Below, piece after piece: positions 17,890-59,803 of a stretch of DNA of 64,000 nt. A model generated the notes under the pieces. The model was not told the origin of the DNA. It did no database searches and saw nothing but the letters and a program-made list of their open reading frames with translations. Location: sequence record LC819007.1, one strand, 5' to 3'. Made by a program: the position numbers and the translations under genes. Within the stretch, counting starts at the first letter, position 1; each line of letters begins with the position of its first letter.

Positions 17890-18334
17890 TGCTATCCTCG
17901 CTCTTATGCTCGATGCTCCAGCGCTTGCGCTTACTAGCGTCGATGATAATGCCCAGATCCCGCTGATCTTCGGCCTGCATGATTTCCAACGAGGTAAGTT
18001 TTCGCACGGGCGACCAGGTCGTTTCATCCGCCTGCTCGAAAAGCCAGTGGACATACTGGTCGCCGTCAAAGCACACCGCCATGTTGGGGTTGTCTTGCAC
18101 GCGAATCAGGTTGGTCGCGCCCTGTGCATCCCCGACTACCCGTTGTCGGAGCCACTGGCCTTCCTCTTCCTGGTTCAGACGTACCGAACAAGTAGCGAAG
18201 TCACACAGCGGCCCATCAACATGTACACAACTGCCACGTGCTTTGTCCTTGTAGACACTGCAGTGGCGTACGGGATCGTCAGGTCGCGACAGGAGTTCCT
18301 TCAGCGGCTTTAGCAGCTGCTTCAGCTTCTGCAT
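17873..18334 (-). CDS. hypothetical Cys-containing protein
   Basis: 153-aa ORF filling the gap; overlaps the ligase 3' end by 56 nt. Confidence 0.55.
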   Translation of the reverse strand: MQKLKQLLKPLKELLSRPDDPVRHCSVYKDKARGSCVHVDGPLCDFATCSVRLNQEEEGQWLRQRVVGDAQGATNLIRVQDNPNMAVCFDGDQYVHWLFEQADETTWSPVRKLTSLEIMQAEDQRDLGIIIDASKRKRWSIEHKSEDSNEVSA

Positions 18335-19589
18335 CTTTGGCCTCCAGCCATGCGTTGGAAATGATCTTCATGCTTTCGCCAGTCACCTCGCTCTTGGCAA
18401 CCAGCCCTTCACGCGGACGCTTCGGTTCGAAATGACCCGGACCATCGGCCAGCTTGAGCAGGTCTTTGATCGAGCCAGTGAGTGGAGTGCCCGACGACAC
18501 CAGCGGAACGTACTTGATGCCGATCGTTTCACACAGCCGGCGTGCTTCGGGCGGAGCCATCATCTCGTTGCCGTTCGTGTAGACACGGTAGCAATAGAAC
18601 TCATTGTTAGGAGCGAACTCTGCCCCGCCATTGAAGTTCGGCCCGACCATCTCACCTTGCAGCGAGACTTTCTTGCCAACGACAGCGCTAGCCGCCAGCA
18701 CGAGCGCCGACATTCCGCGTTCCTTGAAGTAGCGCACGATCGGCACCGTCTTCGGATCGTACTGAGTGACCCAGCGCGGCACATAGATCTCGGCACCCGC
18801 CAGCTTGCGCGGGATATAGCGGAGCCAGCCCGCCAGATACACGAGCAGCTGTTCCTTGAACGAGTACGGGATGGGTTCCAGACGCAGTGCGAAATTGCGC
18901 TGGGCTGCGCCGACATCGTTGGAGTCCGCTGCCGTGTAGAACGTGGTCGATTCGCCGTCGAGCTTGACCGACAGTTCCACCGGCTCTTCGTCCTTGACCA
19001 GGCGAGCATGCAGTGCCGAGACGTTCTGTACGCGCTGCTCTTCCGACTTCACCAGATGCGTCGGCCAGGGCAGCAGACCGTCGACGATGATGTCCTTGAT
19101 CAGCCAGTTACGAAGACGCCAGATCAGCTTGCGGGTCGCCGTCATGTTCCGAGGCTCGTTGCTTGCTTCCTTGTACAGCTTCGCTTCTGCGGGCGAGACG
19201 TACTTCAGCACACCGATGTGTTCGGTGTAGTCGTAGTCCGCCTTAGCTGTCGAACCGATGCGACCCAGACGATCCAACGACAATACCAATCCTTGCGAGC
19301 GCACGCCGCGCAGCTTGAGCGTCTTGATCACTGCGAACTGCTTGCCTTCGTGTTCGACCACGCGCAGGCGCGACTGATCGAAGTCAGCCCACAGTTCGTG
19401 ATCCAGCGGAATCGCTGAATCGATCTCGAAATACAGCGCCAGATCCCCAGCGTTGTACTCACCCTTGGGAACGATACATTCCCAGCCACCGACGACCGCT
19501 ATTTCCAGACGGTCTGCCTTCGGAATCGCTTTGATCTCGTCGATGCGCACCGCACGAGCCAGCTTCCGAGTTTCTTCTTTTACCAGCAT
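18279..19589 (-). CDS. ATP-dependent RNA ligase (Rnl2/DRB0094-like) with N-terminal OB-like domain
   Basis: Motif I KLDGES, III LQGEMVG, IIIa FYCYRV, IV REGLV, V KIIS; N-terminal IPKADRLE.AVVGGWECIV..GEY..GD.ALYFEIDS. Confidence 0.9.
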   Translation of the reverse strand: MLVKEETRKLARAVRIDEIKAIPKADRLEIAVVGGWECIVPKGEYNAGDLALYFEIDSAIPLDHELWADFDQSRLRVVEHEGKQFAVIKTLKLRGVRSQGLVLSLDRLGRIGSTAKADYDYTEHIGVLKYVSPAEAKLYKEASNEPRNMTATRKLIWRLRNWLIKDIIVDGLLPWPTHLVKSEEQRVQNVSALHARLVKDEEPVELSVKLDGESTTFYTAADSNDVGAAQRNFALRLEPIPYSFKEQLLVYLAGWLRYIPRKLAGAEIYVPRWVTQYDPKTVPIVRYFKERGMSALVLAASAVVGKKVSLQGEMVGPNFNGGAEFAPNNEFYCYRVYTNGNEMMAPPEARRLCETIGIKYVPLVSSGTPLTGSIKDLLKLADGPGHFEPKRPREGLVAKSEVTGESMKIISNAWLEAKDAEAEAAAKAAEGTPVAT

Positions 19590-20505: not shown

Positions 20506-21462
20506 TTAGTTGAATTTACCAGCATCGACTTGCTGCTGTTGATGCTGGGTAAGCGGCTCGCGGCGGTCGTTCACACCAGGGATCGGCACCGGACGAGCCA
20601 CGATGTTCTTCGCGAGATCGCTGTAGATCGGCGCACCCTTGAAATCGTGATCGACAGGAGCCATCGGGTCCGTGTTGCCCTGAAACAGAAACTGGGAAGT
20701 ACGTTGGACGACCGACAGCAGGCTTTCGTGACCGTGACAGATCTCGTTAGCAAGCTGTTTGAACGCCTGGTAAAGACTGTGACTGTTCGGCTGTCCCAGT
20801 TGCTCCATCAGGCGCTTGATGATCTCGTCCTGCTTCGTCGCACTGACCTTGTTGATCACCGACGGCTCATGGAACTTGGCCAGGGCCATGCCGAGACGCG
20901 TTATCCAGGTTTGCGACTCTACCGTCTTCGGTGGAAGCCGCACGGCGACAACAGGAACCTCGGGCAACGGCACCATATACTTCAACCAGTCGGCTTCGAA
21001 CTGTTTGTCCTCGCCACCTTCGCGCAACACGACGTCGGTCACACTGCACCACTTGGCACGCCGAATCAGATCGTTCAGTGACTTTTGCACACCATCCGTC
21101 ACCACACCACGTGGCAAGAACCAGCCGCCACCATCCGGCACCTGTCCATCCTTAAGCACGACAAGCACGCCGATTGGATTCATGACCAGCAGATCGCCGC
21201 GAGCAAAGCGCAGCGTTTTGTCATCCTGCGTGATCAGATACAGATCGTCGTTCTCGTGCGTGACCGGATAGCCTTCGTACGAGAACGACCAGGGCACCCC
21301 GTTATGGATGCTGGCGCCCGACTGGTTCTTGCCGATCAGGACAAACTCGTCGAACGTGATGAAGCGAACGCGCACCGAAGCAGCCAGGCGCTCCGGTGCA
21401 GTGTGGCCACACCCCTCCACACCCTTACAGATGGGGCAGGGCAAATCCATAGACTTTGACAT
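20506..21462 (-). CDS. hypothetical multi-domain protein
   Basis: 318-aa ORF, AAGGAG RBS, N-terminal CPIC..GCGH. Confidence 0.75.
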   Translation of the reverse strand: MSKSMDLPCPICKGVEGCGHTAPERLAASVRVRFITFDEFVLIGKNQSGASIHNGVPWSFSYEGYPVTHENDDLYLITQDDKTLRFARGDLLVMNPIGVLVVLKDGQVPDGGGWFLPRGVVTDGVQKSLNDLIRRAKWCSVTDVVLREGGEDKQFEADWLKYMVPLPEVPVVAVRLPPKTVESQTWITRLGMALAKFHEPSVINKVSATKQDEIIKRLMEQLGQPNSHSLYQAFKQLANEICHGHESLLSVVQRTSQFLFQGNTDPMAPVDHDFKGAPIYSDLAKNIVARPVPIPGVNDRREPLTQHQQQQVDAGKFN

Positions 21463-21471
21463 CCTGACTCC

Positions 21472-21966
21472 TTAGAGAATGTGGATCACGCAGAACTCGG
21501 GATGGAACATACCCTTGTTCTTCTGGAACGCTTTTTCAAGCGCCGCGTACGGACTGTGCTCGTCCACCGGCCGACCGTCATTGTCGATCACGAGCACTTG
21601 TACGCCGTCGAGCTTGCTTTCGATCAGGTGATGGCGTTGGAGCAACTTGTGCTCGATGTCATCCGGAACTTGCCGTGCCTGGCCGTGCGCGCCGAGAATC
21701 GGTTGCACCATGATCCGCGCGTGATCGCGCTTGCGCACGACGTCGATGCCCATTTCCGTCTTGCCCGTTTGACGCGGACTGCCGATCGTGAGCACACGGA
21801 ATTCACGCAACTCGAACACGGGTTCGATCTCGACCATGTTCTTGATCATTTGGTTACGCAGCGTCGCGCCCTTGATGAACGTCCAGATCATGTCTTCCCA
21901 CGGATACGGCGGCGGGGGACGATTCCATGCGGTCTTCTTCGGGACCTCTGCAGCTACTGTCGACAT
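21472..21966 (-). CDS. small P-loop NTPase-like protein
   Basis: GSPRQTGKT Walker A-like and VLVID Walker B-like; start at MSTVAAE. Confidence 0.55.
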   Translation of the reverse strand: MSTVAAEVPKKTAWNRPPPPYPWEDMIWTFIKGATLRNQMIKNMVEIEPVFELREFRVLTIGSPRQTGKTEMGIDVVRKRDHARIMVQPILGAHGQARQVPDDIEHKLLQRHHLIESKLDGVQVLVIDNDGRPVDEHSPYAALEKAFQKNKGMFHPEFCVIHIL

Positions 21967-22504: not shown

Positions 22505-24334
22505 TTAAGCTGCCTTCTTCAGCAGGCGATCGGTCACTTCTGCGAGCGTCGTTTCGTCGACGAACTGGCTGTTGGTGTAGCGCAGACGCAGTTCACCCGA
22601 ATGCGTCGGGATTTCTTCGATCGAGAACTTCTGCTCTTCTTGCTTGACGAAGTCGCCCTTGTCGTTCTTCACGACACGCAGGAAGCCCTTCGCCGACTTC
22701 TTGTTCGTGACGCCTTCGGTCTTCGGTGCCTTGAAGAGTTCGATCAGTTCGTCTTCGACCTGCACGGCCGTTGCCTTCACTGCGAAGCCGAGCGTGTCAC
22801 GCGTGTTGTGCTGGTACGTGTACGAGCCGATACCGAACACCGTGTTGCAGGACGCGAAGCCCTTGAAGGCCAGACGACGCAGGATTTCGTCAGCGCGCTC
22901 GACCGTGATCGAGTCACCGTAGATCAGGCCGACGCGTTCGTGCAGAACCTTGTAGCCCTTGTTCGTGAGCGTGCCACCGAAGATGTCCCACAGTGCTTCC
23001 ACGGCACCCTTTTCCTGGATCGTCAGCGGAGCGAACGAAACCGGCACGATCAGGAAACCGTTGACTTCGCCCGTCGCGAATTCAGCGTACGCCGGCACAC
23101 CGCCCGCCGAGGTCTTGTTGACCGCGCGCACCAGATTGCCCGCGCCGAAGTCGACGAGGTATTCCGATTGCGGATCACGCATTTCTTCGGTGCTGTTCGT
23201 GATGCGAATGAAGTCGTCCTTCGAATGGATGTAACGACCTGCCAGCACCTCGACAGGATCGCCCGAGTCCGGACGGTACACCACCTTCGCGAAACCGTTC
23301 TCGTCCGGCGTACGTGCGAGGATTTCTTCCTTCAGGTTCGCCGAGTCGGCCAGCGTGTTCCAGAAGTCGAAGCTGTCGGCCACGAGCGAGATGATCCCCG
23401 TCGGATGTTTGCGCGTGATGACGTCACGGATGAATTCGCGTTCGCCATGTGCGCGCAGTTCTTCCACGTTCGGCTCGTTGCCCTGCAAACGCATGACATC
23501 GACGAAAAGCTTTTTCATCAGCTTGCTGACGTTGAACAGAATGTTCGACGTAGCCACCGCGTGTTCCGTTGCCACCACCGAAGTAGCCACGAATTCCTTC
23601 TCGACGTTCGCGCCGTACATGTCTTCGACGTAGTCGATCGCCGGCAGCGTGTCCGTGCCCTTGAACACGACCAGGTGGCCCGAGCCAACCCGTGCTGCAT
23701 CTTCCGGACCCGACAGACCGCGGAATGCGAAGTCATGGCCCTGCACGTCGACGAATGAACGGTCGACGCCCGTGACGTCTGCCCAGTATTCGAACGTGCG
23801 ACGGTATTCGTACGCGATCGTGGCGTTCGTGGACATCTTCCACAGCAGCGCCGACATCAGCGTTTCGAGGTAGTTCACGAGCCAGAAGAAGTCCGGATGC
23901 GTGTTGTACGCCACGTACACCGGCACATTCATGTTCACGCGTTCGCCTTCCGGCAGCGAGAGCACGTTGATCGGCAAGTAGCCGAGGTCGTGCAGTTGTT
24001 CGAAGCACGTGACATCGACGCGGTTATCGCCGAGGTAGTGCTTCATGCGGCGAGCGTAGCGGCGGCAGACGACGTCCTTCGGCTTCGAGAAGAACGAGTT
24101 GTGCCACAGGCCGTTGATCTCGCGCAGCGTGCCCTGCATGCCGAAGAACACCATCTTGCCGTCCCAGAAACGCGACTTCGACTTGTTGTCGATGAACAGG
24201 CGATCCGAGCGGAACGTACCGTTGCTGTACGTGAATGTCGTGCCGTCCGGGTAGAGCGGGCGGTGACCGACCTTGTAGCCGTCGGTAGTGGTGGGAGCGA
24301 ACAGGTGGAACGAAGTATCTTGAGTTTGGTGCAT
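22505..24334 (-). CDS. nadV: nicotinamide phosphoribosyltransferase family protein (NAMPT/NadV; likely Namat of NARP1)
   Basis: TDGYKVGH, HDFAFRG, SVVATEHAV, SLVADSFD, RPDSGDP, IYGDSIT, FGIGS..YQ..TRDTLGFAVKAT, KKSAKG motifs. Confidence 0.95.
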   Translation of the reverse strand: MHQTQDTSFHLFAPTTTDGYKVGHRPLYPDGTTFTYSNGTFRSDRLFIDNKSKSRFWDGKMVFFGMQGTLREINGLWHNSFFSKPKDVVCRRYARRMKHYLGDNRVDVTCFEQLHDLGYLPINVLSLPEGERVNMNVPVYVAYNTHPDFFWLVNYLETLMSALLWKMSTNATIAYEYRRTFEYWADVTGVDRSFVDVQGHDFAFRGLSGPEDAARVGSGHLVVFKGTDTLPAIDYVEDMYGANVEKEFVATSVVATEHAVATSNILFNVSKLMKKLFVDVMRLQGNEPNVEELRAHGEREFIRDVITRKHPTGIISLVADSFDFWNTLADSANLKEEILARTPDENGFAKVVYRPDSGDPVEVLAGRYIHSKDDFIRITNSTEEMRDPQSEYLVDFGAGNLVRAVNKTSAGGVPAYAEFATGEVNGFLIVPVSFAPLTIQEKGAVEALWDIFGGTLTNKGYKVLHERVGLIYGDSITVERADEILRRLAFKGFASCNTVFGIGSYTYQHNTRDTLGFAVKATAVQVEDELIELFKAPKTEGVTNKKSAKGFLRVVKNDKGDFVKQEEQKFSIEEIPTHSGELRLRYTNSQFVDETTLAEVTDRLLKKAA

Positions 24335-24361
24335 GATGGTATTTTCTTCTTGCTGTTATGT

Positions 24362-25261
24362 CTAAACGTTGAACCAGTGAACGCGACGCAGTTGCTCGTC
24401 GTTGCGGAAGCGATCGCTCGACAGACGGAATTCGGTGGTGCAGTCCGGGTGGAACGAGTCGGTCGTGTAGATGCGATCGAACACGTCGAGCACAGGCTCC
24501 AAGCCGTACGAGAAGATTCCGTGCGTAACGAACAGGCTCAGTTCCTTGCAGCCTTCGTCGCGCAGAATACGGCCCAGCTGGATGAACGTGCGGCCGCCGT
24601 CGCAGATGTCGTCAACTACAATCAGGTTTTTACCTGCAACGTTACCGTCCAGCTTGGTCTCCGTGATTTCCATCGTCTCTAGGTTACGCGTCTTGGTCGC
24701 GGTGACGTACGGAATGTCGAGCTTCTCGGAGAGCGCCTTGATCTTCTTGACGGCGCCCGCATCGGGAGCTACCAGCAACAGATCCTGGGTGTTAAGGCTC
24801 AGAATCTGTCGCTCGACGATTTGGGCCAGGAAAGACTGTTGCGTCGACACGAAACTGCGATTGATCGCGGCGGCTGCGACGTCGCTGTGCGGATCGAGCA
24901 ACGACACCGATTCGAAATTCATGGCGTTGACCAGCTGCGCGAACATGCTCAGCGACAACGCTTCGCCCGAGTTGCAGACACGGTCTTGACGAGCGTACGG
25001 CAGGTACGGAATGAACGCGCTGATTCTGGCGACCGGCGCAATGCGACGCAGTGCATCCACCGTCATGAACATCGCCATCGCGTCGTCGGAGTTCGTAATG
25101 TTCGCCGTCAGTTCGACGGCAGCTCCATTGAGCACCATCCGAAGTAGGTTATTGATAACCTGTTCCGGCAAGCGGATATTCACTTCACCGCCTTTGAAGA
25201 TCTTCACTTCGACCGGCAGCTGCTGGTGATGCACGCTGTTGCCAATACTAACCTTAATCAT
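24362..25261 (-). CDS. prs: ribose-phosphate pyrophosphokinase family protein (likely Adps of NARP1)
   Basis: FKGGEVNI, PYLPYARQDR, LDPHS, APDAGA..K, VVDDICDGGRTF, LFVTHGIFS motifs. Confidence 0.92.
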   Translation of the reverse strand: MIKVSIGNSVHHQQLPVEVKIFKGGEVNIRLPEQVINNLLRMVLNGAAVELTANITNSDDAMAMFMTVDALRRIAPVARISAFIPYLPYARQDRVCNSGEALSLSMFAQLVNAMNFESVSLLDPHSDVAAAAINRSFVSTQQSFLAQIVERQILSLNTQDLLLVAPDAGAVKKIKALSEKLDIPYVTATKTRNLETMEITETKLDGNVAGKNLIVVDDICDGGRTFIQLGRILRDEGCKELSLFVTHGIFSYGLEPVLDVFDRIYTTDSFHPDCTTEFRLSSDRFRNDEQLRRVHWFNV

Positions 25262-25343
25262 GTTCTTACTCGACTTTCTTCTTGTACTGGTGTAAAAAGA
25301 GAGGAGGGCCGCGGGGAACGGACACCTCCTCCACCAAAAAAAC

Positions 25344-26216: not shown

Positions 26217-26571
26217 AACCTTCTCCTTCTAACGTTTCACCGCTAAAGCGCCACTCCACGAACTTGGCATCCATGCGATTCTTGAAATGGAACACCGGTG
26301 AGAGCACATTGTCAAACTTCTTCATCGGCATGCCGTGCAGAAACGACCACGAGAACGCCGTGATGCCCTTATCGCGCAGATGCTGGAGCAGTTCGTCGAT
26401 CCACAGATCCAGCGGTCGCGTTTCACTGGTGATGGGCGGGAAGATCACCGTGTACCAGCCGTATGGTGTCGGCTGATCGAATACCGGTTTCTCTTCCTTT
26501 TCCTTGCCCTGCTTTGCCGGTGTTTTTACCGGCGCTTCCTTTGGCTTGTTCACTCGCACCTCAAACTGCAA
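26209..26571 (-). CDS. hypothetical protein
   Basis: 120-aa ORF overlapping both neighbours by a few nt. Confidence 0.65.
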   Translation of the reverse strand: MQFEVRVNKPKEAPVKTPAKQGKEKEEKPVFDQPTPYGWYTVIFPPITSETRPLDLWIDELLQHLRDKGITAFSWSFLHGMPMKKFDNVLSPVFHFKNRMDAKFVEWRFSGETLEGEGCV

Positions 26572-27451
26572 ACGGATACTGGATGGCCGGGTGGAACTCC
26601 GTGTACTTCACTTCGAAGTCATTCACCGTCACCCACGTTTCGACGTCTTCCAACGTCTTGATATCCGGGTTGATGTCGATGGTCGGCTCAGCCAGGATCG
26701 GGCGGTCCAGTTGTTCCTGCACCAGTTCCAGCTGATTGCCGTAGATGTGGCAGTTCACGTTGCGGTGATACGCGAACTTCGGGTTCTTGCCCGTGATCTG
26801 CGCCATCAAACGCAACAGCAGCCACACCTGCACCATGTTCGCGACCGTCCCCAGCGGCCAGTCCGACGAACGCTGTGTCGAGTTCAGATACAGGTCGTTG
26901 CCGAGCAGCGAGAACTGGTGTTCGTACATGCACGGACGCAGACAGCCGAGATGGAACATGCCCGGATTCCAGAACGTGATGATTTCACCACGATCGTCAA
27001 CGCCCTTTTTCAGGTTGTTGTAGACCTTCTTGAAAAGATCCACGCTACCCCGCGCGTCTTCCAGCGTGAGCGGTTCAGTCGGCCAGTTCTTGGCGACAGC
27101 GCCGTAGATCAAGCCGAGGTCGTCTTCGCCTTGGCGATTCGGGTTGGCCAGCCACGAAGCATTTTCGTTGGCATTGGCATCCCACGACTTCGTGCCGAGC
27201 GCACGCATCTGGGCGGCTGAGGTCACGCCCTTGATATACCCCAGCATCTCAGCGATCGGCAGCTTCACCGGTGCTTTGCGCGTCGTGACGATCGGTGCCT
27301 TGTTGCTGGTGGCGTCGTACGTCATGTCGATGTTGATAATCGTCCGGCAGTTGATGCCAGTACGGGCATTCGGCAAGTCAACGCCGTGCTCGTAAATGTG
27401 CTGCAAACCTGCGAGGTACTGCATTTCTGCGCGATCGATAGCGTGGGACAT
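26561..27451 (-). CDS. thyA: thymidylate synthase
   Basis: RTG, P.VTTRK, LGLIYG, WNP, LRPC (catalytic Cys), QRSSD.PLG...N, HIYGNQ motifs; start at MSHAIDR. Confidence 0.95.
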   Translation of the reverse strand: MSHAIDRAEMQYLAGLQHIYEHGVDLPNARTGINCRTIINIDMTYDATSNKAPIVTTRKAPVKLPIAEMLGYIKGVTSAAQMRALGTKSWDANANENASWLANPNRQGEDDLGLIYGAVAKNWPTEPLTLEDARGSVDLFKKVYNNLKKGVDDRGEIITFWNPGMFHLGCLRPCMYEHQFSLLGNDLYLNSTQRSSDWPLGTVANMVQVWLLLRLMAQITGKNPKFAYHRNVNCHIYGNQLELVQEQLDRPILAEPTIDINPDIKTLEDVETWVTVNDFEVKYTEFHPAIQYPFAV

Positions 27452-43226: not shown

Positions 43227-44618
43227 TTACTTCGCAGCAGGCTTGGCTTTCGACACTTCGACCGATTTCTCGACGTAGCGAATGAAAGACGCGGCGTTCT
43301 GGATGTTCACGCGCAGCAGCTGCGGCACGACGACAGTCGCGATAGCGGTGAGCGTCTTCAGATACAGCTCGACCATCTTCACCGACTGACCGCTTTCCGC
43401 GACCTTGGCAAAGCCTTCGATCTTGGCGAGACGATCGGCCAGATGGTTCTGGTCGGCGTTCCACTTCTTGACGAGTGCGAGCATGTCAGTGGCGAGCTTC
43501 TTCTCCACCACGGGGATGCTGCCGCCTTCGACGAGCGGCACTTCACCCGGAGCGACACCGGCCTTCACGACACCACCCTGATCCATCGGCTTCGAGAAGG
43601 CGAGGTACAGTTGCAGGCCGCCGATCTGCGGCTCGGTCATGCCGCCTTCGAGCTGTGCATTGCTCGTGAGCTTGGGCTTGAGTTCGCTGACGATCGAGTC
43701 GGGGATCTTCGAGTATTCGAACACGTGCTGGCGCAGACCACCGAGGATCTTCGACAGTTCGACGTACACCGGCAGGGCGTCTTCTTCGCCCTTCTTGGCG
43801 GTTGCCGACAGTGCGTTCAGGAACGAATCGTTGAAGAAGCCGTAAAGCGTCTTCGTGGCGAATTCAGCGTAGCGACGGAACTGAGCGTTCGCATCGCCAG
43901 CGTTCTTCACCATACGCAGCGACTTGACGAACGCTTCGTCTTCGATGGTCGCATTGCCGTCGATCTGGTTGACTGCAGCGAGTGCGCGCTCGGCCTTGGC
44001 CGTCAGGCCGTTGAACTTCTGCGCGATGCTGCGCACGACGTTGACGATCCAGGCGATGATCTTCTTGATACCGGCGAGCAGACGATCGAGAATGCTCTTC
44101 GACTTTTCCTTTGCTGCCGCGCCGACGGCCGCCACTTGACCTTCCGGTCCGGCTTCGGCAACGTCGCTGTCTTCCAGAGCAGCCAACGCATTGGGGATAT
44201 CCACGCGCAGACAGATCTGTTCGAGTGCCATGGCGTAACCCGCCACGGTGGCCTTGTTGGCCTGACCGGTCTTCAGCGCCATATCGCAGATGTAGGCGAG
44301 CTCTTCCAGAGCAGCGCCGGCGGAAACAGCTTCTTCCAGATCCTGATTGACGGAATCCGACGTGTTGCTGATTTGTTCGACATCGTTATCGAACACTTCG
44401 CCCGACAGGTCGTCGTTTTCAGCAGCGAGCGTGGAGTTCTTTTCCATCAACGTGGCGACAGCATCCGTGTCGGAGTCGATGTTGGTTTGCGTAACGGGCG
44501 GAGCGCCCGCGCTGCCTGCCTGCAACTGAGCGACAGAGTCAACTGCGGATACATCCGTGCTCGCCTCTTGCTGCAGCTCTTCCAGAGCGGCAGTAATGAA
44601 AGGACTGCGTTTTTTCAT
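43227..44618 (-). CDS. internal head protein paralog
   Basis: Start MKKRSPF; three AALE motifs; ILDRLLAGIKKIIAWIVNVVR amphipathic helix. Confidence 0.75.
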   Translation of the reverse strand: MKKRSPFITAALEELQQEASTDVSAVDSVAQLQAGSAGAPPVTQTNIDSDTDAVATLMEKNSTLAAENDDLSGEVFDNDVEQISNTSDSVNQDLEEAVSAGAALEELAYICDMALKTGQANKATVAGYAMALEQICLRVDIPNALAALEDSDVAEAGPEGQVAAVGAAAKEKSKSILDRLLAGIKKIIAWIVNVVRSIAQKFNGLTAKAERALAAVNQIDGNATIEDEAFVKSLRMVKNAGDANAQFRRYAEFATKTLYGFFNDSFLNALSATAKKGEEDALPVYVELSKILGGLRQHVFEYSKIPDSIVSELKPKLTSNAQLEGGMTEPQIGGLQLYLAFSKPMDQGGVVKAGVAPGEVPLVEGGSIPVVEKKLATDMLALVKKWNADQNHLADRLAKIEGFAKVAESGQSVKMVELYLKTLTAIATVVVPQLLRVNIQNAASFIRYVEKSVEVSKAKPAAK

Positions 44619-44703
44619 GGTGTCTTGTCCGACTAGGTTATCAATGGAGGTCCGTTGAGTACACATACCCACGGGAATTTGAGCCTCGATCACAATATAG
44701 CCA

Positions 44704-44737
44704 GCATAAAAGCGGCAGGCGAGGTGCCCGCCGCTTC
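44704..44737 (-). terminator. intrinsic terminator-like hairpin
   Basis: AAGCGGCAGGC/GCCCGCCGCTT stem with TTTTATGC tail. Confidence 0.7.
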
Positions 44738-44762
44738 TACACTTACTACTGAGGCCGGAGAC

Positions 44763-46172
44763 TTATTCCTTCGAACCACGCGCCGCAGCTTTCGCTTCAG
44801 CGATCGAGAAACGAATCCAGCGCGACGCGCCGAAGTGGTTGTAGTACAGGCCGTGTGCCGAACCGAACGTCGTACCCGCCACCAGATCCGACAACAGACG
44901 CATCAGGTTGGAATACTTCGAGAGCAGGCGACGTGCTTCATCAGCATTGTCGCCGCCACCGCTGCGATGCGGCTTCGACTTGGTGTCGTCACCGATTTCG
45001 AACAGGGCGTTGATTGCCATGTCGATCGCGCGATCAGCCTTGCCAGCCGATTCCTTCAGCTTCGCGAGGTCTGCAGCCGAAGCACACTTGATGCCGGCGG
45101 AGAACTCGGTCTTGCCGTCGTCGAACGTGACTTGCTGGCCTTCCATGCCGCCCGTACCGTCGATCGTCAGACGATCCGGCAGGTTCACTTCGACCGTCAC
45201 CGACGAATGCTGGAACTTCGAGCGACCCATTTCGGCCAACGGCTTCGCAGCGCTGATGGCGCTGTTCATGCGGTTGATGACGTCCTTCGGCTCGCTCAGC
45301 ACCCATGCCTGGCTCATCGCGTGCATTTCGCTCGACACACGATTCACGAGCTTCAGCACTTCGTTGAACTCAGCCAACGAGTTGTCCACGACTGCGATCG
45401 GGGTCTTGGTCGACGAAGGCGCGTAGAAACGCTCCTGCACCGCCTTTTCCCACTTCGCGTTTTGGAACGGTTTGCCGGCGACGCTCGCCAGAATGCCCGC
45501 TTCCTTTTCCAGCTTCGCGTACACCGACACGGTGCCACGGAAGTAGTCGGCGAAACGCTTGAGCTTTTCAGCGGTCAGGTCGTACGCCTTCTTCATGAAC
45601 TTCGCAGCAGCTGCGTAGACCTTTTCAGCGCGGTCACGCAGTTGTTCGACGAAGCTTTCCGTCGCGATGCGGCGGTCGAAGCCGAACGATTCGAGTGCGA
45701 CCGATTCCGACAGGGGCTCGCCCACGCCAGCAGCGTCGAGCGCCGTGGTGAGCAGCTGCACCGTTTCCGGGGTCAGGCCGTCGCCGCTGACAGCGGGCAC
45801 CGGCTCGCCGGCGTCTTCGCCTTGCGTGACTTCCGTTTCAGCCGGCTCTTGCAGGCTGGCTTCAGCTTGTTCAGCGATTTCTTCGAGCGACGCTGCGTAA
45901 CGGCAATAGCGCATCGTCACAGCTTGCAGATGTTCCAGGGCCAGGGTATGTTCCTGGCTTTCGGCGACCGTGTCGATCTCGTCGTGCTTGGCGATCTCGG
46001 CATCTTCGCCGAAGGTCTTGTCGGCCTTGACGTCATCCGTCGACGGCTCTTCGAGGCTGCCGTCTTCCTTGAAGCCGGGCTTCGGCTGGAACGTCGACAG
46101 CTCGGTCACCTGAGCGATATCGACAGTACCGGCTTCGGCTTCCAGTGCTGCGGTGAAAAGATTTCGTTTCAT
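44763..46172 (-). CDS. internal head protein paralog
   Basis: 469 aa; AALEAE, LALEHL, VALESF, IATESF motifs. Confidence 0.75.
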   Translation of the reverse strand: MKRNLFTAALEAEAGTVDIAQVTELSTFQPKPGFKEDGSLEEPSTDDVKADKTFGEDAEIAKHDEIDTVAESQEHTLALEHLQAVTMRYCRYAASLEEIAEQAEASLQEPAETEVTQGEDAGEPVPAVSGDGLTPETVQLLTTALDAAGVGEPLSESVALESFGFDRRIATESFVEQLRDRAEKVYAAAAKFMKKAYDLTAEKLKRFADYFRGTVSVYAKLEKEAGILASVAGKPFQNAKWEKAVQERFYAPSSTKTPIAVVDNSLAEFNEVLKLVNRVSSEMHAMSQAWVLSEPKDVINRMNSAISAAKPLAEMGRSKFQHSSVTVEVNLPDRLTIDGTGGMEGQQVTFDDGKTEFSAGIKCASAADLAKLKESAGKADRAIDMAINALFEIGDDTKSKPHRSGGGDNADEARRLLSKYSNLMRLLSDLVAGTTFGSAHGLYYNHFGASRWIRFSIAEAKAAARGSKE

Positions 46173-46207
46173 GTTTATCTCAGTTCTTGAAGTCGATGGA
46201 GGCTTCA

Positions 46208-46239
46208 GAGTAAAGCCCGTCGTAAGATAGGCTTTACTC
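46208..46239. terminator. terminator-like hairpin between head paralogs
   Basis: GAGTAAAGCC/GGCTTTACTC 10-bp stem; no clear U-tract. Confidence 0.55.
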
Positions 46240-46253
46240 CTCTCTCAGGACGA

Positions 46254-47603
46254 TTACTCGCCCTTCTTGCCGAAGGCGCCTGCAACCTTGTCCTTCGCAG
46301 CGGAAGCGGCTTCACCAGCTTTCTCGCCGATCGACTTGTCACCGCGATGGGCTGCGATTGCAGCCATGCAGTATTGCAGTGCGATCGTCGAGGCCGACGT
46401 AGCGTACGCGTAGGCAGCGACTTGCGGACCCTTGATGATGCGCGGCACGACGGCTTGCATCTGCTTGAGGACCTTGCTGTCGGCTTCGCCGGCGCTGCCC
46501 TTGGCCTTGCTGGCTGCGCGGTCGAGTTCCTTGTTCAGGTCGTCGAGCTGCTTCAGATTGCTCTGATAGATCTTGACGAGCTGGCCGAGGCCGACGACGT
46601 ATTCCGCGATCGCCTTGATCTCGTTGCCGTCGGGCGCAGCGATTTCCGCTTGCGGCTTGACTTCGTCGAGCTTCTTGACGCCGTGGTTCCAGTGGTTGAG
46701 CGCGTCGACGTTTTCCGGCACCGTGAAGAAGGCGCGGTAGCCGCCGAAAAACGGCTTCGTGACGAGGGTCTTCGTGCCCGCTGCGGCGCCCGCAGCTTGA
46801 GCTTGTTCAGCCGATGCGTCTTCGTCGTATTCGCCGCCAGCTTTCGCCAGGGCTTCGAGGAAGCGATCCATCACGCCTTCAGCAGACGAGCTGCCGGCAG
46901 CCACGACGTCGATACACGTACGCGCTTCCTTCGTGAGTTCGACCGAAGCCTTGCCGCCTTGATCGTTCGCGAATTCCGACACCGACATCATGACTTCGCC
47001 GACTTCGACGTTCTTGTACGTCGCGATCTTGTCGAGCAGGCCCTTGTCGGTGATCTTCGCACCTTCGGTCGTGGCGAGCGTCTTCGTCGCTTCGATGATC
47101 TTCTGCGCCTGGTTGGCGTTCTTCACGATACGATCCGTGAACTTCGCCCACGTTTCGCGAACCCATGCGCCGATCTTCTTGCCGAAGTTGCGCAGCATTT
47201 CCCAGACCTTGGCTGCGAACGCCTTGATGCGCTCCAGAACCTTGCCCTTGTCGGGGTTGCCACCCTTGTCGCCCGTGAGGGCCATCGCGCCACCCGGCGT
47301 CGAAGCGACCAGGTCGTTCGATTCCAGTGCCACGTTCACAGCCTTGGCCGCGAACGGCTCCATCGGCTGATCCATTTCGCCCGGTGCATCTTCCACCAGG
47401 CTGATGATGTCTTCCAGACCCTGTGCTGCGTCGGTGATCTGTTCGACGTCGCCGTCGATGTCACCCGATTCCTGCGGGAAGTCGACACCAGCGGTTTCTT
47501 CGCTGAAGTCGCCGTCCACCGGTTGTTCCGGCGCGATGGTCGCGTTCACGTCTTCCGCGAACTCTTCCAGCGCAGCCATGGTTTGTGCGAAGGATTGTTT
47601 CAT
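46254..47603 (-). CDS. internal head protein paralog
   Basis: 449 aa; AALEEF, QGLEDI, VALESN; VLERIKAFAAKVWEMLRNFGKKI helix. Confidence 0.75.
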   Translation of the reverse strand: MKQSFAQTMAALEEFAEDVNATIAPEQPVDGDFSEETAGVDFPQESGDIDGDVEQITDAAQGLEDIISLVEDAPGEMDQPMEPFAAKAVNVALESNDLVASTPGGAMALTGDKGGNPDKGKVLERIKAFAAKVWEMLRNFGKKIGAWVRETWAKFTDRIVKNANQAQKIIEATKTLATTEGAKITDKGLLDKIATYKNVEVGEVMMSVSEFANDQGGKASVELTKEARTCIDVVAAGSSSAEGVMDRFLEALAKAGGEYDEDASAEQAQAAGAAAGTKTLVTKPFFGGYRAFFTVPENVDALNHWNHGVKKLDEVKPQAEIAAPDGNEIKAIAEYVVGLGQLVKIYQSNLKQLDDLNKELDRAASKAKGSAGEADSKVLKQMQAVVPRIIKGPQVAAYAYATSASTIALQYCMAAIAAHRGDKSIGEKAGEAASAAKDKVAGAFGKKGE

Positions 47604-47682
47604 TTTTCCAGTATCCGATTTTGGTGTGGAGATTTCAGACAGGGGAGATTCGCGTCTCCCCTGCCCTACTCACGAATTACGT

Positions 47683-49953
47683 TCAGGCCTTGGCCGCGAC
47701 CGCGGTGCTCTTGTCTTCAGCAGCGCCACCGAGGCTCGCTGCGACGTAGTCGAGCGCGAAGCCCAGGTTACGCGGCAATGCACGGTTGATCGCGTGGATC
47801 GGCAGCTTCGGCGAGGTCATGAACAGCGAGTTGATGAACACCAGCGACTTGCGCAGGCCTTCACTCTTCGCACCGACTTCGTCGAGCATCTGCTTGAGCG
47901 CACCATTGGCCATCGCCGTGACGGTGTCCTTGCGCTTCTTGATTTCCGCGTTCAGTTCCTTGATGCCGCCGCGATTGCCGTCGCTTGCTTCGCGAGCGGC
48001 CTTGGCCAGTTCCGCCACCAGTGCGCAGATCTTGCCGGCTTCGGCTTGATCCAGTGCCTTGACCGAGTTCGACGGTGCTTGCGCGCCGGTGTTCTGCACC
48101 GAGCTCGACATGCCACGGATGCCTTCAGCCGACGACGGGATCGAGGTGACCAGCACTTGGCTGTCCAGCAGCGAGAACGCCATCATCTTCAGCAGGTTCG
48201 AGTTGTCGCCGAACTTGAAGTCCATCGGCTTGAACGTCGAGCGGTGACCGATCGCTTCCATCTGTTCGGCCCACTTCGCGAGCGTTTCCGAGATCTTGCC
48301 GCGCAGCTCTTCTTCCTTCTCCGGCGTCTTGACCATTTCTTCCGCGAGGTCGAGGGCCTGGAGATACGGCGCGTAGGTCTTCGGATCGTTCAGCGACTTG
48401 GCGAATGCAGCCAGCTCGCCCAGGTACTTCGGCAGATCTTCGATTTGCTTGTCGCCAGCGGTCAGCTTCTTCGCGAGAGCCTTGCTGTCGATGTCGCCTT
48501 CCACCATCTTCGCGCCCTTGACACGCTCAGCGAGCTTGTTGGCACGTGCTTCGACCGCAGCGAAAGCGTTCGTGAGACGTTTGTACGTTTCGACGATCCA
48601 CTGCGTGAGGCGTTCGAATGCGTCTTGCAGCGCCTTGATGATGCGGCGGATGAACGCAACGATCTGGTCCTTCGCACCGTTGGCACCGTCGATCTTGGCC
48701 GACGGCGTTTCCATGTCTTCCAGCGCCGGGATCATCAGCGGCTTGACCTTCAGCGACTTCGTGACCGTGTTCAGGTTGTTGCGCAGGAACGAAGCACCGA
48801 AGATGTCCAGGCCACCGCGTTGAGCAGCAGCATCGAGAATCGCCACGCAGCCTTCGAGCGACTCGGTTGCGTCCGTGAGCTTGCTGACGTCGTCTTGCAC
48901 GTCTTCGGACTGGTCTTCGATTTGGTCGACGGCGTCCATTTCGCCTTCGACTTCTTCTGCTTCTGCGTCGCCGATGTCGGCGTCGTCCACCACGTCGCCG
49001 GGCTCGCCCGTCGAAGCAGCATCGCTTGCAGCAGCGGCAGCAGCCGATGCGTCGGTCTGGTCTTCAGCGCTTTGTGCAGCGTCCGCGGCAGCAGCCGGAT
49101 CGGTTGCAGCAGCGTCGTCAGCGCCCGGCGTAGCCGAAGCGTCGTCAGTCGCGCCTGCGGCGGCATCGTCGCCTGCAGCAGCAGCGTCATCGGTAGCGCC
49201 CGCCGAAGCGTCGTCACCGGTTGCAGCACCACCAGCAGCGTCTGCAGCGGCCGCATCTGCGTCCGGAGCAGCTGCGCCATCGCCACCAGCAGCAGCGTCG
49301 TCACCCGTTTGGGTCGCGGCGTCAGCGTTGGCATCGTCGCCTTCCGGCGGCGTCGCGCCGTCAGCACCAGCTGCGGCTGCATCGGCGTCGTCCGTCGATT
49401 CGTTCGCGGGCTTGGCCTTCGGCTTGGCCGGCTTCGCGCCACCCTTGGCACCCTTGGCCGTTTGCGTGGCCGCTTGATTCAGAATGCGATCGAGCTCGCC
49501 GCACTTCTGCTTGAGTTCCTTCTGCAGTTCTTCGATCTGATGGCCCTTGATAGCGCCGTAGATGCCGCCGAACAGGCCACCGAGCAGTGCGCCTTGGAAG
49601 ATCGTACCGAAGCTTGCGCCTTCGACCTTTTCCTTGAAATCTTCCGCCGAGAGCTTGCCTTCTTTCACGGCCTTCTTGCCGTTGTCGATGGCTTGCGTCT
49701 TGATGGCTTCCGTGATCTGCTTGATTTCCTTGCGGAGCTTGTCCACTTCAGCAGCACCAGCACCGCCGACGATGATGCCAGCGCCCGGGATGACCCAGTT
49801 TGCGCCGCCCACGACGAAACCGAGCAGCGCGCCCGCGACGCCTTCATTGGCCGGAACGTACTGAGCGACTTGCGACGGTTTCGGCAAGTCGTCGGTGAGT
49901 TCTTCCAGGGCGGCAATACCCAGTTGCGACTTAAACTTCATGGTTTTCTCCAT
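47683..49953 (-). CDS. internal head protein paralog with Gly-rich hydrophobic N-terminal domain and Ala/Asp linker
   Basis: 756 aa; AALEE, ANEG, ANES, ESLEG, PALED motifs; start may be 49941. Confidence 0.75.
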   Translation of the reverse strand: MEKTMKFKSQLGIAALEELTDDLPKPSQVAQYVPANEGVAGALLGFVVGGANWVIPGAGIIVGGAGAAEVDKLRKEIKQITEAIKTQAIDNGKKAVKEGKLSAEDFKEKVEGASFGTIFQGALLGGLFGGIYGAIKGHQIEELQKELKQKCGELDRILNQAATQTAKGAKGGAKPAKPKAKPANESTDDADAAAAGADGATPPEGDDANADAATQTGDDAAAGGDGAAAPDADAAAADAAGGAATGDDASAGATDDAAAAGDDAAAGATDDASATPGADDAAATDPAAAADAAQSAEDQTDASAAAAAASDAASTGEPGDVVDDADIGDAEAEEVEGEMDAVDQIEDQSEDVQDDVSKLTDATESLEGCVAILDAAAQRGGLDIFGASFLRNNLNTVTKSLKVKPLMIPALEDMETPSAKIDGANGAKDQIVAFIRRIIKALQDAFERLTQWIVETYKRLTNAFAAVEARANKLAERVKGAKMVEGDIDSKALAKKLTAGDKQIEDLPKYLGELAAFAKSLNDPKTYAPYLQALDLAEEMVKTPEKEEELRGKISETLAKWAEQMEAIGHRSTFKPMDFKFGDNSNLLKMMAFSLLDSQVLVTSIPSSAEGIRGMSSSVQNTGAQAPSNSVKALDQAEAGKICALVAELAKAAREASDGNRGGIKELNAEIKKRKDTVTAMANGALKQMLDEVGAKSEGLRKSLVFINSLFMTSPKLPIHAINRALPRNLGFALDYVAASLGGAAEDKSTAVAAKA

Positions 49954-58296: not shown

Positions 58297-59727
58297 TTAG
58301 CCGAGAATTGCTTCCGCTTCACCCTGCTCCATGCCGAGGTTCTTGGCCTCTGCCAGCACTTTCTCACGCAGCTTGGCGGAGACCGCTTGCTGCAGAGTTG
58401 CTTTCAGATTGGCCAGACCGCGCAGGAAGCCGATCAGCTGTCCGATCACCGAGTACGAGAACGCGATACGTTGCGTGGTCGGAATGATGACCTGCTTGTT
58501 GAAGTTCTTGAGTGCGTCGAGCGAGGCCTTGGCCTGTTGCTCCAGCTGCTTGTCCGGCGTGTACAGCTCCATGCGATACAGCGACTCGGTAAGCGTCTCC
58601 ATTCCGGAGAGGAGCTTCTGCTGGTCATGCATGTCCGACTCCAGCATCTCGCGACCGTAGATGAATGCGGCAGTCATCTTGGGCGACGCAGCCAAGCGGT
58701 AAAAGTCTTCCCACTTCTCAGCGCGATAGTCCGAGTTCAATTGCTTGAACGCGATCAGGGCTTTGGCGTGCGCGTCAGCAGCCGCGACGATCTTGCTGAA
58801 GTGGTCGCCCGTCACTGCTTTCTCGACGCCGTCGTAGTCCTTGCGGGACACTGCGCGTTGCAAGTCAGCGAGCAGGATGTTCACGTTGACGATGCTGTCT
58901 TCATGCGTGGCCATCAGCGGAGCGATACTGTCCTGATCACCCAGGAACTTGGTGACGAACGGCAGCTTCGAGAGCATCGCGTTCAGCTCCATCAGCAATG
59001 CTTCGTTGAACACTTCGGCCGGACGCATCGTATCGACCACCTGCAACAGCTTGGCGGTCTTCTCAGCCTTGGCTTTGGCTTGTGCGGCGACTTCCTGATC
59101 GTGCTCGGCTTGCTTAGCCGCTTCGTCAGCCTGACGCTGCAGCACAATCGCACGTTCCTTAGCCTGCTGGATGATCTCGGCCGTTTCTTTCTCGTAGCCG
59201 CCGAGTGCGGCACCCACTTGCTGCACTTCTTCCTTGGCCGTGCCCAGCAACTTCACGTTCTCGGGCGTGGTGATTTGCTTCTCACCGACACGCGAGACCA
59301 GGCCCTTGAACCAGCCGACGATCTTGCGATACATGTCGACGATGAAGTCCTTGATCTTCTGCAGGATGCCGCCCTTCTTTTCCTCGACCTCTTCGTTCGC
59401 CACCTGCAACAGCGTACGGCTCGGGTGTTTGGTGAAGAATTCGACCGGCCGGTCGTCATTCAGGAAGCCGGGCATCAGGCTTTCGCATTCCAGGGCGATG
59501 GTCTGATCCATGCCCTTGTTGGCCTTGATGCTGCCTTGCAACAGTTCGAGATCGCGCAGCTGCACTTCGAGGTCTTCGACGCCGACCGCGATCAAGTCGA
59601 TGTCATCACGCAGCTCGGGAAGTTCCCCGTTGTCGCTTTCCTTGAAAGCGTTGACGGTAACTGCCGGGGCTGCTTTCGGTTCCATGCTGTCGTCTGCCAG
59701 CAGGAATTCGTCATTCAATCCGGACAT
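58297..59727 (-). CDS. internal head protein paralog
   Basis: Start MSGLNDEF; IALECE, VANEE then ILQKIKDFIVDMYRKIVGWFKGL helix. Confidence 0.7.
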   Translation of the reverse strand: MSGLNDEFLLADDSMEPKAAPAVTVNAFKESDNGELPELRDDIDLIAVGVEDLEVQLRDLELLQGSIKANKGMDQTIALECESLMPGFLNDDRPVEFFTKHPSRTLLQVANEEVEEKKGGILQKIKDFIVDMYRKIVGWFKGLVSRVGEKQITTPENVKLLGTAKEEVQQVGAALGGYEKETAEIIQQAKERAIVLQRQADEAAKQAEHDQEVAAQAKAKAEKTAKLLQVVDTMRPAEVFNEALLMELNAMLSKLPFVTKFLGDQDSIAPLMATHEDSIVNVNILLADLQRAVSRKDYDGVEKAVTGDHFSKIVAAADAHAKALIAFKQLNSDYRAEKWEDFYRLAASPKMTAAFIYGREMLESDMHDQQKLLSGMETLTESLYRMELYTPDKQLEQQAKASLDALKNFNKQVIIPTTQRIAFSYSVIGQLIGFLRGLANLKATLQQAVSAKLREKVLAEAKNLGMEQGEAEAILG

Positions 59728-59803
59728 GGTGGATGTTCTCTCAATAATCAATGGAATAAAGCTCCAGTGGACCGCGTCCACTGGAGCTCTGTGTTGCTGA
59801 AGC

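Follow-up and report, generated by a model that had tools for sequence, protein, structure and literature searches.

A probable NARP1-type Adps-Namat gene pair in the phiKZ-like jumbo phage FLC4-3B of Ralstonia

The stretch of DNA analysed here (hereafter the window, 64 kb at its full length) is 100% identical to the corresponding part of the genome of Ralstonia phage FLC4-3B (LC819007.1, 291,257 bp); window positions are used unless stated otherwise, and equal positions in the LC819007.1 record minus 186,000. Within the window lie two intact open reading frames (ORFs), gp230 and gp229, which contain no internal stops and are co-oriented on the minus strand, with gp230 upstream, gp229 downstream and a gap of 27 nt between them (Table 1). 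An earlier prediction made from the letters alone (the original prediction) had pointed to two adjacent, co-oriented genes 27 nt apart, and two minus-strand ORFs do occupy those exact coordinates. It had further proposed that the two genes constitute NARP1, a known phage pathway that rebuilds nicotinamide adenine dinucleotide (NAD+) from its breakdown products and so defeats bacterial NAD-depleting immunity. The findings presented here argue for that proposal: gp230 and gp229 very likely form a functional NARP1 module, made up of an ADP-ribose pyrophosphokinase (Adps) and a nicotinamide ADP-ribose transferase (Namat). In the LC819007.1 record gp230 is annotated 'putative ribose-phosphate pyrophosphokinase' and gp229 'putative nicotinate phosphoribosyltransferase', generic names that are used across most of the ~1,600-2,000 phage records with these genes and that here are probably misnomers inherited from the annotation of the related phage RP12. 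(FLC4-3B was published in 2024 and the genes were not annotated as NARP1 there.) The same region is present in the sister phage FLC1-1B at 99% identity, and a part of it is matched, at 77%, by the Ralstonia phages RP12 and RP31. With regard to recent horizontal acquisition, the GC content of the gp229-gp230 region is 0.57-0.59, like that of the remainder of the window. The order of adps followed by namat is common to the phages Bas63 (gap of 45 nt), ICP1 (33 nt), RP12 (38 nt) and SPbetaL1.

Because Adps is a homologue of phosphoribosyl pyrophosphate (PRPP) synthetase (PRPS) and Namat is a homologue of nicotinamide phosphoribosyltransferase (Nampt), family names cannot decide whether a pair of this kind is NARP1 (discovery paper: bioRxiv 10.1101/2024.02.11.579819). 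For Namat, a 'selectivity clamp' has been described that consists of a helix motif, SCH, and a lengthened beta1-beta2 loop, SCL. The SCH pattern GS-X-phi1-X-phi2-X-phi3-TRD, with its adenine-stacking aromatics, occurs in Namat only; the SCL adds a further stacking residue (third residue Arg, Lys or Tyr); and double mutants indicate that SCH position 3 and the SCL Arg account for most of the effect (PMC12774641). For Adps, according to the structure paper, the PP loop is remodelled and conserved across the family, Lys185 is catalytic and the PRPS alpha11-alpha12 module at the C terminus is lost, and the K185A substitution in ICP1 Adps abolishes formation of ADP-ribose pyrophosphate (ADPR-PP) (PMC13586617). 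As validated comparators we used Bas63, in which deletion of the NARP1 operon sensitises the phage to SIR2-HerA, ICP1 (for which there are Adps structures) and SPbetaL1 (the biochemical reference, with Namat structures 9W5X/9W5W). Further comparators were the relative RP12 and the NARP2-type Nampts of the KVP40-like phage PG216 and of Ralstonia phage RSP15, the latter with an adjacent NMN adenylyltransferase (Nmnat).

Database searches with gp229 returned NAPRTase (2.4e-31) and otherwise only a weak match to NAMPT_N in Pfam, phrog_448 (2.5e-176) in PHROGs, NF006629 (439.8 bits, cut-off 405) in NCBIfam and, by phmmer, SPbetaL1 Namat (9W5W/9W5X, 6e-113). More discriminating is the clamp, of which the SCH motif is present (Table 1). 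Positions 2, 3 and 7 of this motif are those that discriminate, and gp229 has Ser, Tyr and His there; position 3 is Tyr505, in agreement with the published Tyr/Phe stacking rule. Among the 120 closest homologues of gp229, position 2 is Ser and position 3 is Tyr or Phe in every one, and position 5 is Tyr in 119. As a negative control we examined 120 homologues of the RSP15 Nampt, in which position 2 is Gly (119 sequences) or Ala (one sequence), position 3 is Ala or Gly, and positions 4 and 5 are Leu throughout; none of these 120 Nampt-type homologues has Ser at position 2, an aromatic residue at position 3, Thr at position 4 or Tyr at position 5. In these two samples of 120, the clamp motif separates Namat-like from Nampt-type homologues completely.

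The second part of the clamp, the SCL, is longer in gp229 than in any of the comparators, exceeding that of SPbetaL1 by 9 residues, that of Bas63 by 5 residues and those of the two NARP2-type Nampts by at least 12 residues. Note that a basic residue in the Arg45 column is not discriminating by itself because Nampts have Lys there. The core residues D18, Y20, F202, R205, D228, A255, H258, R354, D356, G473, D474, T511, R512 and D513 are all conserved, and two contact positions are conservatively changed relative to SPbetaL1 (S190 to A203 and A362 to S475), with the same states found in Bas63. When scored against a hidden Markov model (HMM) built from the three validated Namats only, and against an opposing HMM built from Nampt-type sequences, gp229 reached 501 bits on the former and 213 bits on the latter; the two NARP2-type Nampts reached 257-258 bits on the validated-Namat HMM. 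The AlphaFold2 model of gp229 has a mean predicted local distance difference test score (pLDDT) of 93.1 and a predicted template-modelling (TM) score of 0.92, and in a Foldseek ranking its first match was SPbetaL1 Namat (9W5X/9W5W, 3.9e-51, TM score 0.93 on the target), followed by HdNadV (~6e-43) and then by mammalian NAMPT (~1e-35).

At 609 residues, gp229 is ~120 residues longer than SPbetaL1 Namat, the excess being made up of two insertions together with the longer SCL. The first insertion is absent from SPbetaL1 and ICP1 Namat and from Nampts, and is found in the same place in RP12 and partly in Bas63; the position of the second is common to the Namats of RP12 and Bas63. An intein as the source of the excess length was ruled out, as Bas63 and RP12 have the two insertions too, and Pfam matched gp229 to nothing other than NAPRTase and, weakly, NAMPT_N. 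Separately, three metagenomic homologues of gp229 (891-902 aa; contigs of up to 298,583 bp) contain a segment of ~310 additional aa between halves that align well to gp229, and these segments show weak, sub-threshold matches to Hint_2, LAGLIDADG_3 and Intein_splicing. The segments are probably inteins in a counter-defence enzyme; there is none in gp229.

The upstream gene, gp230, belongs to the PRPS family, matching Pribosyltran_N, Pribosyltran and Pribosyl_synth in Pfam and phrog_619 in PHROGs (2.3e-85, 287 bits), and its best PDB match by phmmer is a canonical PRPS (85 bits). Among NCBIfam models, only that of the broad subfamily TIGR01251 is passed (157.5 bits, cut-off 113), with a match that stops at profile position 272 of 309, and every PRPS equivalog cut-off is missed widely (for example 124.8 versus 297, 121.2 versus 296 and 104.1 versus 484 bits). 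Comparison by tblastn gave gp230 an identity of 38% with the Adps of Bas63 and of 36% with that of ICP1. The most informative feature is the PP loop (Table 1), which reads DDICDGAASF in ICP1 Adps; the canonical PP/ribose-5-phosphate loop of the PRPS enzymes of Burkholderia pseudomallei and Escherichia coli is DDM(I/V)DT(G/A)GTL. Of 119 homologues of gp230 with a recognisable loop, 92 have exactly DDICDGGRTF and none has the canonical DT(G/A)GT state. Residues R91, H125, D167, K190, D217, D218 and D221 are conserved as well; PRPS also has them, and hence they do not discriminate. The AlphaFold2 model of gp230 (pLDDT 95.0) finds PRPS as its best PDB folds (TM score ~0.75). The tail past the last core motif comprises 29 aa in gp230, 15-26 aa in validated Adps and 42 aa in B. 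pseudomallei PRPS, and in the model it forms an 8-residue helix (residues 277-284) and a short strand. As modelled, the C-terminal alpha11-alpha12 module appears reduced in gp230.

The original prediction had credited the two proteins with full PRPP-synthetase and NAMPT motifs. In gp229 the contact residues for nicotinamide (NAM) and nicotinamide mononucleotide (NMN) and the catalytic His258 are conserved. For gp230 the statement needs to be amended: the catalytic and acceptor residues are there, whereas the PP loop is DDICDGGRTF and not that of a canonical PRPS. This departure from the canonical loop in fact favours the NARP1 interpretation that the original prediction had put forward.

Table 1. 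Features of the gp230-gp229 locus of FLC4-3B (window coordinates) and clamp strings of the proteins compared
Feature	Position	Strand	Detail
gp230, adps-like, PRPS-fold ADP-ribose pyrophosphokinase candidate	24362..25261	-	299 aa, ATG start
gp229, namat-like long form, nicotinamide ADP-ribose transferase candidate	22505..24334	-	609 aa, ATG start
Adps-type PP loop DDICDGGRTF, gp230 residues 217-226	24584..24613	-	identical to validated Bas63 Adps
Lys190 of gp230	24692..24694	-	invariant column; aligns to the catalytic Lys of ICP1 Adps (Lys185) and SPbetaL1 Adps (Lys162)
SCH motif GSYTYQHNTRD, gp229 residues 503-513	22796..22828	-	fits GS-X-phi-X-phi-X-phi-TRD (PMC12774641)
SCL, gp229 residues 42-65	24140..24211	-	Arg45 aligned to adenine-stacking Arg40 of SPbetaL1 Namat
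His258 of gp229, conserved catalytic (phospho-)histidine of Nampt/Namat core	23561..23563	-	invariant column; aligns to SPbetaL1 His245
Insertion 1 of gp229, ~residues 265-297, helical hairpin with flanks	23444..23542	-	helices 258-280 and 290-309 in AlphaFold2 model
Insertion 2 of gp229, ~residues 370-439, small beta-rich subdomain	23018..23227	-	block pLDDT 71-95
Intergenic spacer, 27 nt, with purine-rich element CAAGAAGAAA	24335..24361	-	CAAGAAGAAA 8 nt upstream of namat start codon
Terminator-like G+C-rich hairpin followed by U tract	25293..25331	-	between gp231 and adps
Clamp string, gp229 and RP12			GSYTYQHNTRD
Clamp string, Bas63 Namat			GSYTYQYMTRD
Clamp string, ICP1 Namat			GSYTYQYVTRD
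Clamp string, SPbetaL1 Namat			GSFTYQYNTRD
Clamp string, PG216 Nampt			GGGLLQQLDRD
Clamp string, RSP15 Nampt			GGALLQDLQRD
Clamp string, HdNadV, bacterial Nampt (9KE8; identity per Foldseek description)			GAQTYQRNTRD

The remainder of the FLC4-3B genome was searched by phmmer, taking all ORFs of at least 80 aa. No ORF matched Nmnat at E <= 1e-3 with the single RSP15 Nmnat query that was used, a search of limited sensitivity, and none is annotated as such; gp229 is the only Nampt-family gene among these ORFs. The lack of a match to the RSP15 Nmnat in this search, together with the presence of a single Nampt-family gene, argues against a NARP2-type route. (PnuC-like or NadR-like genes, which would suggest NARP3, are not annotated in the record, no search having been aimed at them.) With phiKZ gp54 and gp39 as references, we found a chimallin homologue, gp309 (1.7e-24 versus phiKZ gp54; 117.5 bits versus PF25677, 'Phikzvirus chimallin family', cut-off 27), and a PhuZ homologue, gp14 (1.3e-30 versus phiKZ PhuZ), and seven split RNA polymerase beta/beta' genes are annotated. 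Ten ORFs of chimallin size in the first 100 kb gave no match when scanned with Pfam, and PHROG scans of 20 window proteins returned unnamed families only and were of no help in typing the phage. RP12 and RP31 have been placed among the chimalliviruses in published analyses. Together with a genome of 291,257 bp, the chimallin, PhuZ and polymerase genes agree with the earlier description of the source as a phiKZ-like jumbo phage, and at the sequence level the assignment of FLC4-3B as phiKZ-like and nucleus-forming holds. Of relevance to the demand for NAD+, gp169 (record 166653-168563, minus strand, outside the window), annotated 'DNA ligase', is a complete NAD+-dependent ligase of the LigA type, with adenylation, OB, HhH and BRCT domains, and replication of FLC4-3B therefore consumes NAD+; the phage also encodes a ribonucleotide reductase and a thymidylate synthase.

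The adps-to-namat gene order, the SCH motif with an extended SCL, the Adps-type PP loop and the failure to find an Nmnat all support the NARP1 pairing that had been predicted. By homology, if gp230 and gp229 do form such a module, a host NADase (SIR2, TIR or similar) would cleave NAD+ to ADP-ribose and nicotinamide, and gp230, a PRPS-fold enzyme that is presumably hexameric, would then move the beta,gamma-pyrophosphate from ATP onto the terminal ribose of ADP-ribose, yielding ADPR-PP and AMP. gp229, as a Nampt-fold dimer, would combine nicotinamide with ADPR-PP to give NAD+ with release of pyrophosphate, such that NAD+ would be regenerated directly, with neither an NMN intermediate nor an adenylyltransferase. 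The pair would be expected to act in the host cytoplasm, so that NAD+ would stay available to a putatively nucleus-forming phage, which shields its DNA and not the metabolites of the host. It is plausible that NARP1 serves here as a complementary layer of counter-defence beside the phage nucleus, an idea that would extend known principles and contributes little that is new.

Several points weigh against reading the pair as NARP1. Clamp position 7 of gp229 is His509, where the published rule has Tyr or Phe, and this is its sole departure from that rule; among the 120 closest homologues His is the commonest state of this position, with 49 cases as against 43 of Tyr and 20 of Cys, so that 69 have His or Cys. 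(An imidazole can stack, and stacking by His509 of gp229 is putative.) The assignment of gp230 as Adps rests on sequence, and a neighbour-joining tree that did not include cellular Prs supports the local clade at 92%, with support of 10-34% along its weak backbone. gp230 does not conserve the aromatic contacts of ICP1 Adps (F18, F92 and F223); these are, however, also unconserved in the validated Adps of Bas63 and SPbetaL1 and are therefore not family-defining. Lastly, Namat enzymes retain some PRPP-dependent formation of NMN in vitro (PMC12774641), and thus the two chemistries are not mutually exclusive. This residual activity also lends some credence to classical salvage, in which gp230 would be a genuine PRPP synthetase and gp229 a genuine Nampt, NMN would be made from ribose-5-phosphate, ATP and nicotinamide, and a host NadR/NadD-type enzyme would finish NAD+, whether as a NARP2-like route or as part of general metabolism. 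The names given by Pfam, NCBIfam and GenBank all say so, gp230 passes the TIGR01251 subfamily model, and the bacterial Nampt HdNadV is fairly close to gp229 (306 bits, Foldseek 6e-43). We nevertheless consider salvage of this kind quite improbable, since in gp230 the loop with which PRPS holds the phosphate of ribose-5-phosphate is replaced by an Adps-type loop and all of the PRPS equivalog cut-offs are widely missed, the Namat-type clamp of gp229 is absent from 120 of 120 Nampt-type homologues, and no Nmnat was found in FLC4-3B with the query described above, whereas NARP2 phages such as RSP15 carry one beside Nampt. Moreover, SPbetaL1 Adps gave no product in a canonical PRPS-type assay, and Bas63 countered defence in hosts without PncC or NadR (bioRxiv 10.1101/2024.02.11.579819).

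A different possibility accepts the NARP1 chemistry and assigns it another purpose, namely that the pair mainly buffers NAD+ for the phage's ligase and for the redox demand of nucleotide synthesis rather than serving as a dedicated counter-defence; a 2026 review reads jumbo-phage NAD+ synthesis genes in this manner, as resource supply. The complete LigA-type ligase, the ribonucleotide reductase and the thymidylate synthase of FLC4-3B are in keeping with such a need. Turnover of an NAD+-dependent ligase such as LigA, however, yields NMN and AMP, while NARP1 needs ADP-ribose, which arises when NADases cleave NAD+. In addition, NARP1 phages made no excess NAD+ in cells without a defence system (bioRxiv 10.1101/2024.02.11.579819). 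There is accordingly little chance, in our estimation, that buffering is the principal function, and buffering and counter-defence are in any case compatible with each other. It could also be that the long form prefers a different ADP-ribose-derived donor or is otherwise specialised, as might be suspected from the His and Cys residues at position 7 in the closest homologues, from the length of the SCL relative to all comparators and from two insertions that fold confidently. That the Namat of Bas63 is likewise of the long form, has its insertions in the same two places and belongs to an operon that counters SIR2-HerA in vivo makes an altered specificity very improbable indeed, as does the conservation in gp229 of clamp positions 2-6 and 9-11 and of the stacking Arg, given that mutagenesis points to position 3 and the SCL Arg as the most important (PMC12774641). 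We favour a functional NARP1 module. That the jumbo-phage long-form subgroup to which gp229 belongs represents a functionally specialised NARP1, through tuning of the donor or adaptation to a nucleus-based life cycle, seems unlikely to us; a possible example of the latter would be the 'NAD+ recycling' suspected after attack on chimalliviruses by a Sir2 NADase (of the Avs5 type).

The sequences that flank the two genes may bear on their expression. The exact 10-mer CAAGAAGAAA occurs only twice in the 64 kb, at 24343-24352 and at 25275-25284 (minus strand), at distances of 8 and 13 nt upstream of the start codons of namat and adps, respectively, and may be a local translation-initiation element. 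(Copies with one mismatch lie directly upstream of the starts of gp224 and of the RNA ligase gene gp223.) The hairpin between gp231 and adps (RNA fold of -23 kcal/mol, z = -3.1 versus shuffles), which has a long loop and for that reason was missed by a consensus scan, may delimit the two-gene unit at its 5' end, and we infer that gp230 and gp229 are co-transcribed. A consensus promoter scan gave no more sites than expected by chance, and no Rfam family reached its gathering score in the window.

Among the neighbouring genes, gp231, gp232, gp228 and gp227 matched no family at E <= 0.01 in a Pfam hmmscan. Just downstream of the pair, gp227 and gp226 (20506-21966, minus strand) match the N- and C-terminal parts of phrog_31185 and are 42% and 50% identical, respectively, to the corresponding parts of a single 376-aa ORF of RP12, ORF210. 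The two lie in a common reading frame that is interrupted by a single in-frame stop and shows no frameshift, and gp226 has ~145 extra C-terminal residues; they could be either a split gene or two genes. RNA-repair genes are found close to the pair in this lineage: gp223 (18279-19589, minus strand) is an RNA ligase that has a PHA02142 OB-fold domain, and RP12 carries an RtcB-like gene immediately upstream of adps as well as an RNA ligase gene two genes downstream. The thymidylate synthase gene gp233 (26561-27451, minus strand) is within ~1.3 kb of the pair, as is likewise the case in the Pseudomonas phage Phabio, whose copy, at 465 aa, is unusually long. Further away, gp256-gp259 (43227-49941, minus strand) are four large genes, of which gp256, gp258 and gp259 cross-match 'internal head protein' PHROGs and gp257 matches an unnamed PHROG only; this points to gp256, gp258 and gp259 being a paralogous family typical of phiKZ-like heads. 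gp266 and gp267 (58297-61132) cross-match each other's PHROGs. Outside the window, gp176 (minus strand), annotated 'phosphoesterase', shows weak DHH/DHHA1 matches below Pfam cut-offs; enzymes of the DHH/DHHA1 type can degrade nucleotide signals.

Strains that belong to the Ralstonia solanacearum species complex carry complete Thoeris systems (for example GMI1000) and SIR2-associated short Argonaute systems, and a NARP1 module would therefore be relevant to which strains FLC4-3B, a phage proposed for biocontrol of bacterial wilt, can grow on. According to the 2026 review, the Sir2 NADase defence Avs5 acts on chimalliviruses, with recovery of NAD+ after the attack being unexplained, and Tad1 is the only anti-defence protein described in jumbo phages, whose NAD+ genes are treated in general terms. 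In the literature that we searched there was no paper on NARP1 in nucleus-forming phages. gp229 and gp230 would thus add a concrete candidate to a short list of jumbo-phage anti-defence proteins. The value of the finding lies mostly in annotation and context, where GenBank names stand against the evidence for Namat and Adps; the understanding of how NARP1 works is unchanged by the FLC4-3B pair, the RP12/RP31 pair was already catalogued, and Phabio has the same two genes.

Of the validated systems, Escherichia phage Bas63 (JohannRWettstein), whose genes 79-80 were validated in vivo against SIR2-HerA, shares with FLC4-3B the order and orientation of the genes and the PP loop DDICDGGRTF, and, at 593 aa, its Namat is likewise of the long form and has a Namat-type clamp. 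The two pairs are only 36-39% identical, however; clamp position 7 is Tyr in Bas63 and His in gp229, the SCL of Bas63 is 5 residues shorter, with Lys-Trp where gp229 has Arg-Leu at the stacking position, and Bas63 is an 87-kb Felixounavirus rather than a chimallivirus. Compared with Bacillus phage SPbetaL1 (Adps gene 190, Namat gene 191), gp229 keeps the stacking Arg and every residue that contacts NAM or NMN bar the two conservative changes noted above, whereas the SPbetaL1 Namat is a short form of 491 aa that lacks both insertions, its clamp positions 3 and 7 are Phe and Tyr in place of Tyr and His, and the PP loop of the SPbetaL1 Adps, DDLSSFGGTF, is more divergent than that of gp230. NARP2 (Nampt plus a bifunctional Nmnat, of the KVP40 type and in RSP15) has the same Nampt fold and the same goal of restoring NAD+; unlike NARP1 it uses PRPP by way of NMN, involves no Adps and employs a Nampt that lacks the clamp motif (GG(A/G)LLQ...RD), and it depends on an Nmnat, encoded next to the Nampt in RSP15 and not detected by the single-query search of FLC4-3B. 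NARP1-AP, as in Vibrio phage Gary, has the same two core enzymes plus Adpp, a Macro-domain ADPR-1''-phosphate phosphatase, and in 15% of NARP1 phages a Macro-domain gene is located no more than two genes away from the operon (found with HHpred). No Macro domain was detected in the two genes on either side of the FLC4-3B pair by hmmscan, which is less sensitive than HHpred, and by its gene content the pair would appear to be the basic two-gene form and not NARP1-AP. As for the cellular relatives, housekeeping class I Prs shares the fold and catalytic core with gp230 (TM score ~0.75), which lacks the PRPS PP loop and appears to have a reduced C-terminal module, and HdNadV (9KE8; TM score ~0.9 on the target) has Ala, Gln and Arg at the clamp positions at which gp229 has Ser, Tyr and His.

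The published survey detected NARP1 in 859 of 20,185 phage genomes; in our tblastn searches of 50,697 phage records, PRS-like genes were present in 1,577 and Nampt-family genes in 2,042, and many of the closest homologues reside on contigs of 200-325 kb. The closest named relatives of the FLC4-3B pair are ORF212 and ORF211 of RP12/RP31, with 57% (Adps) and 73% (Namat) identity, which share with it the gene order, the clamp string with His at position 7 and the long form. The flanks differ: in RP12 the RtcB-like gene lies upstream and a single 376-aa ORF downstream, whereas in FLC4-3B there are unrelated hypothetical genes upstream and two ORFs downstream. The RP12/RP31 pair is listed in Supplementary Tables 1 and 2 of the discovery paper, Namat as 'Adps-associated' and Adps with 'Namat within 10 genes: Yes' (bioRxiv 10.1101/2024.02.11.579819). 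Phabio, a listed chimallin-encoding phage, has Namat-like and Adps-like genes whose products are 58% and 48% identical to those of FLC4-3B, on the same strand, near a thymidylate synthase gene and split by three small ORFs (~1.1 kb). At least two lineages of chimalliviruses have the pair, namely that of Ripduovirus together with the FLC phages and that of Phabio, and the entries for RP12/RP31 in the discovery tables, together with the Phabio pair, mean that NARP1 has already been catalogued in the lineage of FLC4-3B.

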